A stretch of DNA of 64,000 nt, from the sequence record LC819006.1; one strand, 5' to 3'. Of this stretch, positions 1 to 39,049 are shown one piece after another (within the stretch, counting starts at the first letter, position 1; each line of letters begins with the position of its first letter). A model generated the notes under the pieces. The model was given only the letters and a program-made list of their open reading frames with translations, did no database searches and was not told the origin of the DNA. Made by a program: the position numbers and the translations under genes.

Positions 1-110
1 ACCATGGGCGGCGGCAGTTTGTACTTGTTCGAAACGTAAACCAGGTCGCAGAGAATTTCATCCTCCGGACGATCGAAGTCGTATGTCAAGATGAACTGGA
101 AGATCGACAT
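1..110 (-). CDS. 5' part of a hypothetical protein running off the left edge (MSIFQFILTYDFDRPEDEILCDLVY...)
   Basis: ATG at 110 preceded by GGAG on the minus strand; frame open to the window edge; not in the ORF track. Confidence 0.55.
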   Translation of the reverse strand, partial: MSIFQFILTYDFDRPEDEILCDLVYVSNKYKLPPPM

Positions 111-223
111 ATGACTCCGTTCTGGGTTAAAAAATCAAAAAAAAATATACTCGGCTCAAACGATTAATACCGCAGACATACTATCCGGGACTTCGGTCCC
201 GGATAGTATTCATGCAGTTTTAC

Positions 224-565
224 TTAGCGGGAATGCGCCATCGTCCGATGCACAGGACGCACTGGCGCGAGGCCGGCATACGAATACAGATGCGTCGGAT
301 CGATTCCTGCCATCTTGGCGTGGTGGAACAGTTCCGCGATCACTTCCGGACTCATCTTCGGAGCGTGGGTATGGCCCTTGAAGAAGAACGAGATGGTGAT
401 CGGATTGCGTGCACCTTCCTTGAGCCAGGTGCCGACGATCGCGCCATGTTCGCCCTTGCCTGCTGCTTCCGGTCCGAACAGAACTTCGTACTTGTTTTGA
501 CGGTCGGTGTTGATGAAACCCAGTGCGCCCAGAATCTTTTTCATTTGGAATATCCTTTCAATCAT
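224..565 (-). CDS. hypothetical protein, 113 aa
   Basis: ORF co-oriented with its neighbours; TTTAAAATG start context also seen at other genes here. Confidence 0.65.
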   Translation of the reverse strand: MIERIFQMKKILGALGFINTDRQNKYEVLFGPEAAGKGEHGAIVGTWLKEGARNPITISFFFKGHTHAPKMSPEVIAELFHHAKMAGIDPTHLYSYAGLAPVRPVHRTMAHSR

Positions 566-602
566 TTTAAAAGTAGGGGACCGTAGTCCCCAGGTATACT
601 AC

Positions 603-977
603 TTACGACGCGACGTTGCCGTCCTTGTCGTAATACTGCGCCCGTGGATGACCCTTGAAAGTCACCCACCAACCAGGTTTATCATCCCTGGCGTACGGAG
701 CCAGATTCTCCTGTTCGATATCCACGAACTTGAGAACCTCTTCCAGATCCCGAGCCTTGAAGATCGGAATCCACTCACTGGTCGTATACAGATACTGCCA
801 GACAGTATCCTTCAGACCAGGCAGAGCCAGCATCTGCTCGATCGTCAGGTCACTGTCCTGGATCGTAGCTGTCTGGCCCTGATACTCAAACTGCAGGAAT
901 GCTGAATCCTGCAAGATGAGATCGTTCTGTACCTGCTCAAGGGTATAGAACGCATTCATACGCGGCTTTTGGCGCAT
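603..977 (-). CDS. hypothetical protein, 124 aa
   Basis: GGAG RBS upstream; compact tandem arrangement. Confidence 0.7.
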   Translation of the reverse strand: MRQKPRMNAFYTLEQVQNDLILQDSAFLQFEYQGQTATIQDSDLTIEQMLALPGLKDTVWQYLYTTSEWIPIFKARDLEEVLKFVDIEQENLAPYARDDKPGWWVTFKGHPRAQYYDKDGNVAS

Positions 978-34174: not shown

Positions 34175-34450
34175 TTACTCCTCGTTCAGATGCTTAATTA
34201 CCTTGTCAAAGACGTCCTGCCAGGTAGCGAACGGGCCATCGAGAAATCCGATCTCCAGTTCATCTTCCAGTTCAGACATGATGTCCATGTGATCCAGCGA
34301 ATCCAGATCCCCGCTCTGGAAAGGCAACGCCAGGAACTCACGGAACTCCGTACTGTTCTCGACCGCGGTCTTGCGAACCGTTTTCGTGTCGTACGACGAT
34401 ACAACTTGGACGAGCACTCGACGTGCCTTCTGTGCTTTGGCCTCAGCCAT
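34175..34450 (-). CDS. acyl carrier protein-like protein
   Basis: GDLDSLDHMDIMSELEDELEI and ATWQDVFD align by eye with ACP helices II and IV (DSL phosphopantetheine motif, Ser51); 91 aa, acidic C-terminal half. Confidence 0.7.
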   Translation of the reverse strand: MAEAKAQKARRVLVQVVSSYDTKTVRKTAVENSTEFREFLALPFQSGDLDSLDHMDIMSELEDELEIGFLDGPFATWQDVFDKVIKHLNEE

Positions 34451-34547
34451 TTTAAAAACCCCTGCTTGTTATTACTGTTACTGGTTTCGGTCGAAAACCA
34501 AATAATCAGTCTCGCTTCATAAAGCCTCAAAAAAATAAGTAGACAGC

Positions 34548-34586
34548 AAAAAGGGCGGGACAGAGTGGCCGAAGCCACTCCATCCC
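34548..34586 (-). terminator. intrinsic terminator with a cUUCGg loop and U-tract
   Basis: Minus strand reads GGGAUGGAGUGGC-UUCG-GCCACUCUGUCCC GCCC UUUUU. Confidence 0.8.
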
Positions 34587-34589
34587 ATG

Positions 34590-35075
34590 CCTAAGATGAA
34601 ACTGAACTTACATCCCTAGGTCGTCGCATCACCACAAGGAAATGACGAGTGACGACTAAGGGCTATAAGCTTTGCAGCGTTTCCCAACGGATGCGCTACC
34701 TATAACTGGTCCCGAAAAGACCCCTTACAATCGATGCGGGCTTAATACACACGAAGGCCAAACGACGTCCCCGCAAGCGCGAACGCGCGCGCCAGCGATT
34801 TACGTCAGGCATCACTAAGTCCTTAAAGGGAAACTCATATCGGCGGCACTAAGAGGCGGCCATGAGTCGTGATCTTCGCGCAGCTTAGAGCAGTAGTATC
34901 GAGACTCTGCCTTCACCACATACGACGTGTGTATTTCGCGGGCCTTTCACCCGAGTCAGGATATATCGCGCAATCGCACCATCCCGACCTCTGCCTCGAA
35001 CAGATCTTCAGAAGCCATGTTGTTAAAGAACGAGACGGCTAACCAGTCCCTCACGAGATTAGGTTAGCCGCCAGA
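34590..35075 (-). ncRNA. candidate large structured non-coding RNA, family unknown
   Basis: About 480 nt with no ORF-track entry; many stems, GNRA-type loops and G-U pairs on the minus strand; a perfect 10-bp long-range pairing (34744-34753 with 34926-34935); ends at the terminator. Confidence 0.6.
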
Positions 35076-35081
35076 TCACGC

Positions 35082-36398
35082 TTACGGTTGAAGCGTGTCG
35101 GTTTGATCAGCAGCTGCTGCGCCGTCCGCATCAGCCTTCACGTCGGTAGCCGCCGGCGTTTGGACTTCTGCTTGAACAGCAGCATCTGCGACTTCAGCGG
35201 TCGGGGCAACGTCGGCGGGAGCAGCGACTTGTTCAGCCGTTGCGTCCACTGCCGGCGTTTCCGCGGCCGGAACTTCTGCCTGCGCTTGTGCAGCGTCGGT
35301 TTCCACCGGCGCAGCCGTTTGCGCTGCGTCAGCAGCTTGTTCCACCGGAGCAGCATCGACCGGAGCGCCTGCGAGTGCAGCTGCCGTTGCCGGATCTGCA
35401 TTCACTTCAGGCGTTTGGGCCAGAGCTTCGGGCGAGTGATCGACTTCTTGCGAAGCGTCACCAGCCGGAGCGGCTGCTTGTTCCACAGCGGGAGCTTCAG
35501 CTTGAGCAGCATCAGCTGCCGGTGCATCTGCCTGCACTGCGGGGACTTCCGGTGTTGCTTGCTCGCCAGCGGTGGGGTCGACTTCCGGGGCAGCTTCTTG
35601 AGCCACGCCTTCGTCGGCTACGCCAGCCGGTTGAGCTTGTTCAGCAGCAGCGTCTTCCGGCCCAAGCTGCAGCTGGTACGGAACTTCGGCTTGTGCATCT
35701 GCTGCGGGAGCGTCGACTTGCGGAGCTGCGTCAGCCGGGGCTTGAGCTTGCGCTTCGCCTGCGGCCGGGTCCACTTCTGCTGCTGCGGGTGCATCTGCGG
35801 GCTGTTCCACTGCCGGTGCAGCTTGTTCAGCCGTACCTGCATCCGTGCCCGCTGCCGGATCTTGTTCGACGGCCGGAGCATCGCCCGTCGGTTGTGCATC
35901 ACCAGCCGATGCGTCAGCTGCGGGAGCAGCATCTGCGCCAGCGTTGTCTGCCGGTTGGTCAGCTTGTGCAGGAGCGTCGCCGGTCGGCTGGGCTTCTGCG
36001 GTACCTGCGTCGTCAGCAGGCGCTGCGTCTACCGGTGCTGCATCTGCGGGGGCCGCGTCAGCAGGTGCCGGATCTTGAGCTTGATCACCAGCGGCAGGAG
36101 CCGCGTCTTGCGATTGGTCGCCAGCTGCGATCTGGTTGTCCAGGTCAGCTGCTGCTGCGCCAGCGGCTGCGGCGGCTGCCGTACCGTTGTCACCCAGACC
36201 GAGTGCTTCGTTTGCGGTGTCGCCGAGACCTGCGTCGTCAGCGGGTTGAACCACGACCGGGGTCGTTGCGTGCTTTTCGCCGTGCTTGTGGAACAGAGCG
36301 ACGACGTGTGCAACTGCTTCTTCCGGCAGGGCTGCCAAGGCTTCGAGAGCCAGGAGCTCCACCTTGAGTTCTTCGATGGCTTTACGGATGATACCCAC
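35082..36398 (-). CDS. acidic low-complexity protein (Ala/Asp/Pro/Gln/Glu) with a short helical N-terminus
   Basis: GTG start with AAGGA RBS; about 390 aa almost free of basic and aromatic residues; PAADA / PAVEQ-type repeats. Confidence 0.75.
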   Translation of the reverse strand: MGIIRKAIEELKVELLALEALAALPEEAVAHVVALFHKHGEKHATTPVVVQPADDAGLGDTANEALGLGDNGTAAAAAAGAAAADLDNQIAAGDQSQDAAPAAGDQAQDPAPADAAPADAAPVDAAPADDAGTAEAQPTGDAPAQADQPADNAGADAAPAADASAGDAQPTGDAPAVEQDPAAGTDAGTAEQAAPAVEQPADAPAAAEVDPAAGEAQAQAPADAAPQVDAPAADAQAEVPYQLQLGPEDAAAEQAQPAGVADEGVAQEAAPEVDPTAGEQATPEVPAVQADAPAADAAQAEAPAVEQAAAPAGDASQEVDHSPEALAQTPEVNADPATAAALAGAPVDAAPVEQAADAAQTAAPVETDAAQAQAEVPAAETPAVDATAEQVAAPADVAPTAEVADAAVQAEVQTPAATDVKADADGAAAADQTDTLQP

Positions 36399-38392: not shown

Positions 38393-39049
38393 TTACTGAC
38401 CGCCCATCATCTCGTGGATGATCTTGAGCGTATGCAGTCCGCTGTTCTTGGCGAGCACGAAGCTCGACTGCGGCCGGCCCGGCGGGATAACGACTTCATT
38501 CGTTACCTTGTCATAAGGGAAGCCGAACATCTGCGACATCGTGACCAGGTCATACGTGTTACCTTGACGCCAGTCAGGCTCCATGTGGTTGGCGAGCTTG
38601 CTACCTTCGATACCCGAGACCAGATCGACAGCATAGCCGATCTTGTTCTCGCTCTTGGTCTTCTCGAAGTACACCACGTTCAGGCCCGGATAGGCGACTG
38701 CCAGGAACAACAAGCGGTCGTTGTGTGCATCGTACAGGTTGATCGTCGAGCACGGGGGGACCGGAGTGCCGTCGATCTGGACGAACATCGCACTGACGAG
38801 GCGTCCATAATACTCCTCCAAATTCTCCGTCTTCTCGGTGAAGATGAGTTCATTGGTGGTCAGCGTCGATTCCGGGAAATGCGACGAACCCGTGAAATCC
38901 GCGCAGGAGCAACCTGCCTGAAAGACACCGCGCAGATCTTCGGTTTGCTCACCGTATTCCGAGATCAGGAAATCCGCGCTCTTTTTAACCACTTCCGACG
39001 TAACTTCGATGACACGGAAGATATTCACTTGCGAAAGCTTAACCGACAT
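38393..39049 (-). CDS. hypothetical early protein, paralog of the C-terminal domain of 39114-39947
   Basis: Start moved to MSVKL (AGGGG RBS); shared motifs described in the findings. Confidence 0.7.
   Translation of the reverse strand: MSVKLSQVNIFRVIEVTSEVVKKSADFLISEYGEQTEDLRGVFQAGCSCADFTGSSHFPESTLTTNELIFTEKTENLEEYYGRLVSAMFVQIDGTPVPPCSTINLYDAHNDRLLFLAVAYPGLNVVYFEKTKSENKIGYAVDLVSGIEGSKLANHMEPDWRQGNTYDLVTMSQMFGFPYDKVTNEVVIPPGRPQSSFVLAKNSGLHTLKIIHEMMGGQ

Follow-up and report, generated by a model that had tools for sequence, protein, structure and literature searches.

A candidate hammerhead-type ribozyme with domain-sized insertions in an intergenic RNA of Chiangmaivirus jumbo phages

What kind of element occupies the gap between gp211 (35082-36398, minus strand) and the gene for an ACP-like protein of 91 aa (34175-34450, minus strand) in sequence record LC819006.1? 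The gap lies within a 64-kb stretch of that record (hereafter the window, meaning the whole stretch of 64,000 nucleotides that was analyzed), which shares 100% identity with Burkholderia phage FLC8 and with Ralstonia phage FLC4-11C, both phiKZ-related jumbo phages of the genus Chiangmaivirus, to which RSL2 and RSF1 also belong. A prediction made from the letters alone had proposed for positions 34590-35075 a large, multidomain phage noncoding RNA (ncRNA), possibly of a new class. The RNA proved to be genuine, conserved, covarying, multidomain, and located on the minus strand (structured locus, 34540-35084); the claim to a new class did not stand, since its core appears to be that of a type I hammerhead ribozyme. 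The region itself had been placed correctly, although the RNA spans ~35033 to 34548 and so reaches slightly past the proposed limits.

That the gap is a genuine conserved structured RNA, well outside what chance would produce, was confirmed by several properties of the locus. As claimed, there was no open reading frame (ORF) of at least 60 aa between the ACP-like gene and gp211, the longest being one of 57 aa on the opposite strand. The minus strand folded at -219.8 kcal/mol (z = -5.1), better than every shuffled control, and the plus strand had a z score of -3.6. All 11 related records keep the region (76-100% identity), and RNAalifold applied to seven phages yielded 156 pairs, with compensatory changes at 25, extending both conservation and covariation to the whole genus. 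Because the indels measured 1, 2, 5, 16, and 17 nt, which are not multiples of three, the region is noncoding; neither a conserved frame nor a conserved start codon was found. The G-U pairs said to be workable on the minus strand only were borne out in the alignments.

Every helix that had been read off the sequence is present in it: the stem at 35036-35044/35062-35070 with its GUGA loop (in fact of 11 bp), CGGGU-GAAAG-GCCCG (34939-34953), ACUCAU/AUGAGU (34833-34838/34862-34867), the long interrupted stem at 34614-34662 (present as a long hairpin at 34604-34672), the 10-bp long-range helix AAUACACACG/CGUGUGUAUU (nt 150-159/332-341, where nt 1 of the RNA is window position 35084 on the minus strand), and the UUCG terminator (14-bp stem at 34556-34587, then CCCUUUUU). 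The CGUU-GGGA-AACG hairpin was likewise present, whereas the longer GUUAUAG/UUAUAGC stem assigned to it is possible but competes with the better-supported helices H9 and H11. All four copies of CUUAG (34849, 34815, 34656, and 34591) were found, with relatives keeping only those at 34849 and 34591. A proposed 20-codon micro-ORF is not a gene, because its start codon is lost in RsoM3USA (ATG to AGG) and it overlaps the ribozyme core.

To which family, then, does this RNA belong? At the gathering thresholds of Rfam 15, the 64-kb window had no match (group I/II introns, tmRNA, RNase P, GOLLD, ROOL, and riboswitches included), and at E ≤ 10 positions 34300-35300 gave three noise matches only (MIR1512, sR60, and Yfr8; E values of 2.3-2.6); ARAGORN found no tRNA or tmRNA. 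The original prediction that the sequence matches no RNA family thus held for the Rfam search, but a full hammerhead catalytic core and three-stem topology are nevertheless present. These became recognizable in distant relatives. Relaxed blastn matched the CGGGUGAAAGGCCCGCGAAA segment at 26 of 30 positions to a 1.5-kb gap without annotation inside the tRNA cluster of PaBG, a Pseudomonas jumbo phage that is phylogenetically far from the phiKZ-like phages (PMC7412058), and a scan of IMG/VR and metagenomes for GGGTGAAAGGCCCNCGAAA returned several large phage contigs of 103-310 kb (contigs are identified below by L numbers). The compact copies have CUGAnGA and a 4-bp hairpin (loop UUCAAGU) immediately 5' of a shared 19-mer, and on its 3' side follow a short hairpin, U-H, and then 5 nt complementary to the 5 nt that precede CUGAnGA. 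This layout is the hammerhead consensus: stem I, C3-A9, stem II, G12-A14, stem III with A15.1-U16.1, and H17. Judged from sequence, the conserved segments of the window RNA would assemble on the same plan into a complete type I hammerhead core, which would be expected to cleave.

In the window (Table 1), the core nucleotides C3 U4 G5 A6 N7 G8 A9 are represented by CUGAAGA and G12 A13 A14 by GAA (34935-34937), and the A15.1-U16.1 pair is followed by an H17 that is joined directly to stem I. The 10-bp long-range helix noted earlier is stem III plus A14 and U17. All three helices covaried in the hand-built core alignment, at every pair of stem I, at 3 of 4 pairs of hairpin A (stem II), whose loop was nearly invariant, and at 3 of 4 pairs of stem III. 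Within the genus, RSF1 changes stem I in a compensatory manner from GGCUU/AAGCC to GGCGU/ACGCC; in stem III, A15.1-U16.1 is invariant and relatives show U-A to C-G and C-G to U-G. Hairpin B, where a near-exact 19-mer is common to PaBG and metagenomic phage contigs, covaries at its closing pair (C-G/U-A) and has a G-C to A-U change in RSF1. Position 17 was U in Chiangmaivirus and L017, C in L014, L015, L030, L034, and L036, A in PaBG, and never G. By analogy with hammerhead numbering, the scissile bond is predicted to lie between window positions 34744 and 34743. Invariance within the genus was 82-87% for the core segments, 21% for both the linker and H1, and 38% for the stem III insertion.

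Table 1. Features of the structured locus and of the adjoining small-ORF site, in 5'-to-3' order of the RNA
Feature	Window position	RNA nt	Strand	Description
Hairpin H1	35034..35072	13-51	-	Directly after gp211 stop; 11-bp outer stem, inner stem with GUGA loop; several compensatory pairs
Conserved leader	35017..35033	52-68	-	CGUUCUUUAACAAnAnGG; 14/17 columns invariant (82%)
Stem I, 5' strand	35012..35016	69-73	-	GGCUU; pairs with AAGCC at 34739-34743; 5/5 pairs covary, nine lineages
Core block C3-A9	35005..35011	74-80	-	CUGAAGA; CUGA-GA invariant; N7 alone variable (A, U, or C), as usual for hammerheads
Hairpin A (stem II)	34990..35004	81-95	-	UCUG-UUCGAGG-CAGA; 4 bp, 7-nt T-loop-like loop (UUCRAGN)
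Variable linker with hairpin, expansion site 1	34954..34989	96-131	-	36 nt; 21% of columns invariant
Hairpin B	34939..34953	132-146	-	C-GGGU-GAAAG-GCCC-G; invariant extra hairpin between stem II and G12
C, then G12 A13 A14	34935..34938	147-150	-	Invariant in 9/9 aligned lineages
Stem III, 5' strand	34926..34934	151-159	-	AUACACACG; A151 = A15.1; 9 Watson-Crick pairs with 34745-34753
Stem III loop insertion, expansion site 2	34754..34925	160-331	-	172 nt; hairpins H6, H7, H8
Stem III, 3' strand	34745..34753	332-340	-	CGUGUGUAU; U340 = U16.1; pairs with 34926-34934
Predicted cleavage site	34743..34744	341/342	-	U341 (position 17, 34744)/A342 (position 1.1, 34743); by analogy with hammerhead numbering
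Stem I, 3' strand	34739..34743	342-346	-	AAGCC; pairing and covariation
Chiangmaivirus-specific 3' domain	34604..34738	347-481	-	Conserved junction and H9 (GGGGUCUUUUCGGGAC), GGGA-tetraloop hairpin, long hairpin H11
Invariant single-stranded segment	34589..34602	483-496	-	GUUUCAUCUUAGGC; between H11 and terminator; 13/15 columns invariant
Intrinsic terminator	34546..34587		-	14-bp stem, UUCG loop, then CCCUUUUUGC; three compensatory pairs
Small-ORF site	34506-34520		-	In relatives: L002 1607-1867, L003 1609-1779, L004 1607-1804, L005 1606-1800

How well does the hammerhead assignment withstand testing? A core-only alignment was built from nine lineages (three Chiangmaivirus variants, L017, L014, L015, PaBG, L030, and L034), in all of which CUGA-GA, C-GAAA, and the A15.1-U16.1 pair were invariant. 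Across its four core helices (18 pairs), 97.5% of positions were paired and 13 of the 18 pairs had compensatory changes. This alignment was assembled by hand, and the percentage is inflated because pairing was the condition by which the distant 3' strands were found in the expanded members. None of 500 shuffles reached these values, controls with slid strands were 26-42% paired, and a version with eight rows agreed. That 8-10 contiguous pairs of stem III and 4-5 pairs of stem I should occur at an exact spacing of 1 nt is far beyond what such a search would return by chance. A lenient hammerhead descriptor (5-bp stems, G-U permitted) matched exactly once across both strands of the 64 kb, at the structured locus, against a mean of 0.075 in shuffles, and no second hammerhead was found in the window. 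A covariance model (R1) built from four compact non-Chiangmaivirus members only, with loops and linkers trimmed, had its top match in the window at 34909-35016 on the minus strand (28.3 bits, E = 7e-7), a score that owes much to the shared 19-mer, decoys with the 19-mer alone reaching 13-21 bits; it also recovered all Chiangmaivirus loci, L017, and L036 but misaligned the distant 3' strands, because the model cannot span the 172-nt insertion. Constraining the fold to the hammerhead cost 5 kcal/mol (-216.9 versus a minimum free energy of -222.0) and left the other helices unchanged.

Some other candidates were set aside. An additional R1 match at 38788-38884 on the plus strand (14.4 bits, E = 0.029) was judged to be due to chance: although a 5-bp stem I and CUGACGA are present, it is without a GAAA block and lies antisense within a 261-aa ORF. 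A K-turn or box C/D reading of CUGAUGA...CGAAA was rejected since the helices flank the G-A pairs wrongly, as was a permuted-tRNA reading, in which the T-arm-like hairpin is not next to the acceptor-like stem.

The manual search for 3' strands and the two weaknesses of R1 count against the assignment, as does a set of departures from known hammerheads. In canonical hammerheads, A9 and G12 directly flank stem II, whose 10.1-11.1 pair is usually G-C. In the window family, stem II is separated from G12 by a linker (3-262 nt), hairpin B (15 nt), and a C, and position 10.1 is U, C, A, or G instead of the usual G; no description of such a linker, hairpin, and C at this junction was found in the literature. 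The site in the window has U17, and U17 cleaves slower than C17. Rfam hammerhead models gave no match at E ≤ 10 for the window region or the compact L014 copy, nor at E ≤ 1 for PaBG; they miss the window RNA because of its insertions of 36, 15, and 172 nt, and they miss the compact copies as well, so that by the curated models the element is not a hammerhead. There is also a competing fold, an alternative hairpin (nt 70-76/92-98) that RSF1 keeps through the double change U72G and G96U. Finally, the sequences show the core motif, its covariation, and its distribution, and co-transcription, cleavage, and all consequences downstream of cleavage are steps that we infer. The alternative hairpin itself has 7 bp (GCUUCUG/CAGAGGU, 34987-35015, minus strand), is preferred by RNAalifold, excludes stem I and hairpin A, and could be a cotranscriptional folding trap or a switch. 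As a separate observation on L014, weak similarities to pemK and to group II D1-D4 models rest on GGGUGAAAG and fall far under threshold.

Where the core has been expanded, it has been expanded at two sites. The linker is shortest in L014, L015, and L030 (3-5 nt), reaches 13 nt in PaBG and 36-45 nt in Chiangmaivirus as well as in L017 and L036, and is longest in L034 (262 nt). Stem III is closed by a loop of 4-9 nt in compact members and holds insertions of ~130 nt in L036, ~150 nt in L034, 172 nt in FLC8, and ~200 nt in L017 (130-206 nt overall). In the window RNA, H7 of this insertion is Y-shaped with the conserved loop GCCUCUUAGU, and an alifold analysis of the stem III segment gave 13 compensatory pairs, 12 in H6-H8 and 1 in stem III; L017 has a homologous insertion of three hairpins. 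Core connectivity can be regarded as flexible, because hammerhead blocks function in noncircular permutations (PMC10085705).

The ribozyme was found in Chiangmaivirus (11 records), PaBG, and contigs L014, L015, L017, and L036, as well as in the short contigs L030 and L034. The L014 sequence is the same as those of L018, L019, and L022 (contigs up to 266 kb), and the other large carriers are L015 (310 kb), L017 (219 kb), and L036 (172 kb). Compact members of ~70-80 nt without any peripheral domains were those of L014, L015, PaBG, and L030. A flexible two-part pattern had no match in 185,579 prokaryotic genomes; in IMG/VR, it returned nothing new with short linkers and led to L036 with linkers of 35-65 nt. 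The GGCCTTCGTGTGTNTTA pattern matched only RSL2, RSF1, and, by chance, L009 in IMG/VR, and metagenome matches to the 19-mer were mostly due to chance, 13 of 16 being without the hammerhead arrangement. In L017, the gene order is tRNA-Gly, DUF3307, ribozyme, ACP-like (54% identity), and gp209-like (43% identity), and the PaBG and L014 copies lie within or ~1 kb upstream of tRNA clusters.

Several of these loci have peculiarities of their own. The PaBG gap (L013 1198-2692, KF147891 120800-122294; 1.5 kb, unannotated) carries its compact ribozyme at L013 1963-2039 and another T-loop-like hairpin, together with two ORFs that are not annotated but have good ribosome-binding sites (1510-1746, 78 aa; 2504-2686, 60 aa); the neighboring tRNA-Ala is 94 nt long. 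The L034 copy (~140-624, minus strand) resides on a 1.9-kb soil metagenome contig and combines the 262-nt linker with a 10-bp stem III that closes 152 nt. The copy on the 172-kb IMG/VR contig L036 (8584-8833, minus strand) has a 45-nt linker and the hairpin B variant CAGGU-GAAAG-GCCUG; its stem III, which closes ~130 nt, is imperfect (3 bp, then two U-U mismatches, then 4 bp). The protein encoded beside this copy shows no relationship to the ACP-like protein of the window.

If the core is active, what would it do? The ~485-nt minus-strand RNA would most likely be made as a 3' continuation of the gp211 mRNA. Co-transcription with the upstream gene is the most likely arrangement because the L017 ribozyme begins ~10 nt past the DUF3307 stop codon, upstream of the ACP-like and gp209-like genes, and because the window offers no repeated promoter motif, the leader TTCTTTAACAA not being enriched there. 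The core could assemble only after its 3' strands, 260 nt downstream, have been transcribed, whereupon three segments would meet: GGCUU-CUGAAGA with hairpin A; hairpin B with C-GAAA and the 5' strand of stem III; and the 3' strand of stem III with U and AAGCC. Following established hammerhead chemistry, the 2'-OH of U341 would attack its own 3' phosphate and cut between 34744 and 34743, with G12 (G148) as the putative general base and G8 (G79) as the putative general acid. The upstream product would be a gp211 mRNA whose structured tail of 338 nt carries a terminal 2',3'-cyclic phosphate, and the downstream product would be a discrete 5'-OH RNA of ~195 nt, comprising H9, the GGGA hairpin, H11, UUCAUCUUAGGC, and the terminator, a layout that resembles a terminator-capped small RNA (sRNA). 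Cleavage would thereby uncouple the fates of upstream and downstream RNA. In L017, the ACP-like mRNA would begin at the cut; the PaBG and L014 copies would sever a transcript just upstream of a tRNA cluster.

Taken together, we consider it likely that the window RNA is a hammerhead-type ribozyme that is catalytically active and serves in RNA processing. Might it instead be a noncatalytic, hammerhead-like scaffold, i.e., an intact ncRNA of ~500 nt that binds protein or enters a higher-order assembly and whose functional parts are the peripheral and 3' domains? Such an RNA is close to what had been predicted at the outset, and it would suit the covariation of the large conserved peripheral domains, the invariance of a hairpin B and a T-loop-like loop for which no catalytic role is known, an insertion between stem II and G12 that might be incompatible with an active core, and the failure of all Rfam hammerhead models to match. 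Yet a scaffold gives no reason to fix exactly 11 catalytic nucleotides, to vary only N7, and to bar G from position 17 while the helices covary, and the compact members do without the peripheral domains altogether; we therefore judge it unlikely. A cis-regulatory leader is improbable as well. Here, a riboswitch- or attenuator-like RNA, with or without ribozyme activity, would use the terminator at 34556-34587 to control whether transcription runs on into the small ORF and the ACP-like operon, in keeping with its position upstream of co-oriented genes, the strong conserved terminator at its end, the L017 ribozyme immediately preceding the ACP-like gene, and structured domains that could sense a ligand or protein. 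However, no riboswitch or T-box was matched in Rfam at gathering thresholds or at E ≤ 10, no conserved antiterminator alternative to the 14-bp stem was seen, compact relatives occur in other contexts such as tRNA clusters, and L017 lacks the 3' domain and terminator.

It is very improbable that the region is not a functional RNA at all and represents a decayed gene, a DNA-level element (an origin, packaging, or binding site), or chance structure. The neighborhood is indeed fluid, as seen in the small-ORF deletion of FLC8 and FLC6 and in the variable length of gp211, and the plus strand also folds better than its shuffles; but the indel lengths and the lack of a conserved ORF argue against a gene, and dozens of compensatory changes, G-U pairs that work on one strand only, and a core conserved among unrelated jumbo phages leave this explanation effectively refuted by covariation.

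How does the hammerhead-type ribozyme proposed here relate to known systems? Discontinuous hammerheads with long insertions, such as those in mammalian Clec2 3' untranslated regions, have cores that work despite long separating sequences. With type I hammerheads (Rfam Hammerhead_1; order C-G-S, PMC10085705), the window RNA shares an open stem I, the order CUGANGA, stem II hairpin, GAAA, stem III, and H17, the A15.1-U16.1 pair, and all catalytic nucleotides. It differs in the linker, the invariant N-GGGU-GAAAG-GCCC-N', and the invariant C between stem II and G12, in the T-loop-like stem II loop (UUCRAGN) and the unfixed position 10.1, and in its insertions, which among the members measure 130-206 nt for stem III and 36-262 nt for the linker. 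The noncircularly permuted hammerheads (SGC, CSG, and GCS; PMC10085705) likewise have a core that works with an unconventional connection of its blocks, whereas the window RNA keeps the ordinary type I order and its novelty lies in the added hairpin and the domain-sized insertions. Its intergenic or intercistronic position in a phage is shared with many bacterial and phage hammerheads, which process polycistronic RNAs (PMC3088659). The hepatitis delta virus-like theta ribozymes, which adjoin phage tRNAs (PMC10879173), are also small self-cleaving ribozymes of large phage genomes with a tRNA association like that of the PaBG and L014 members, but they belong to another ribozyme class, and the copy in the window has no nearby tRNA. 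The GOLLD and ROOL RNAs are similarly ~0.5 kb, multidomain, phage borne, and in some relatives near tRNA genes; they lack a hammerhead core and had no sequence or structure match here at gathering thresholds or at E ≤ 10.

No paper was found that contains the motif or describes hammerheads in jumbo phages, and the element is best filed as a structural variant of a known ribozyme class, of apparently undescribed architecture, within a larger RNA. More tentatively, it may represent a new hammerhead subclass in which the T-loop of stem II and the GAAAG hairpin form a tertiary clamp that tolerates or exploits domain insertions at two sites, giving ornate ribozymes of 0.3-0.5 kb in jumbo phages only; in that case, the stem III domain might gate the core (allosterically or in time), and cleavage in Chiangmaivirus might free the ~195-nt terminator-capped sRNA with a seed-like segment. 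Should the RNA cleave, it would be a structurally distinct hammerhead with a T-loop in stem II and a conserved hairpin added to a junction that has been taken as continuous, would mean that hammerheads can frame multidomain RNAs of ~0.5 kb, and would explain how such elements escape Rfam-based annotation. Chiangmaivirus and PaBG-like jumbo phages would then gain a defined, mutable RNA-processing site for studying transcript fate. A phage sRNA candidate of ~195 nt, predicted to start with a 5'-OH, would also be defined. For annotation, a "hypothetical gap" in 11 deposited genomes and the 1.5-kb gap of PaBG become a named feature.

Of the domains outside the core, H1 is replaced by a different hairpin in SURPRISE13 and has no counterpart in L017; it is probably a 3' stabilizer or weak terminator of gp211, outside the ribozyme. 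The leader (nt 52-68) might pair with nt 355-362 and so extend stem I distally. In the 3' domain, both the GGGA hairpin (CGUU/AACG, CGUC/GACG, and UGUC/GACA) and H11 covaried; RSL2 has lost the tip of H11. The single-stranded GUUUCAUCUUAGGC might serve the released 3' RNA as a seed or as a binding site; no site complementary to UUCAUCUUAGGC was found within the 64-kb window.

The genes around the locus gave no clue to the element. gp208-210 fall into clade-specific PHROGs, gp212 is a DUF3307 membrane protein, and the other neighbors are clade-specific hypothetical proteins; no reverse transcriptase, nuclease, Cas-like protein, or other evident RNA partner was found among the flanking genes, whose products were uninformative, and tblastn matches of the ACP-like protein and gp211 were confined to the same genus. 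gp211 is A/P/E-rich and of low complexity, has no Pfam or PHROG match, and varies from 251 to 450 aa across relatives; the syntenic L017 locus is without it, the ribozyme there standing directly 3' of the DUF3307 gene. Between the terminator and the ACP-like gene, FLC4-4C, RSL2, RsoM3USA, and RSF1 have a small ORF (57-86 aa, phrog_35443) that is gone from FLC8 and FLC6 through an in-frame deletion of ~183 bp, leaving the residue ATG AAG CGA GAC TGA; SURPRISE13 retains homologous sequence that is not annotated as a gene. The 5' untranslated region of the ACP-like gene contains an invariant hairpin, UGGUUUUCGACCGAAACCA (window ~34476-34494, minus strand), which was kept in all six aligned phages and may be a regulatory or stabilizing element.

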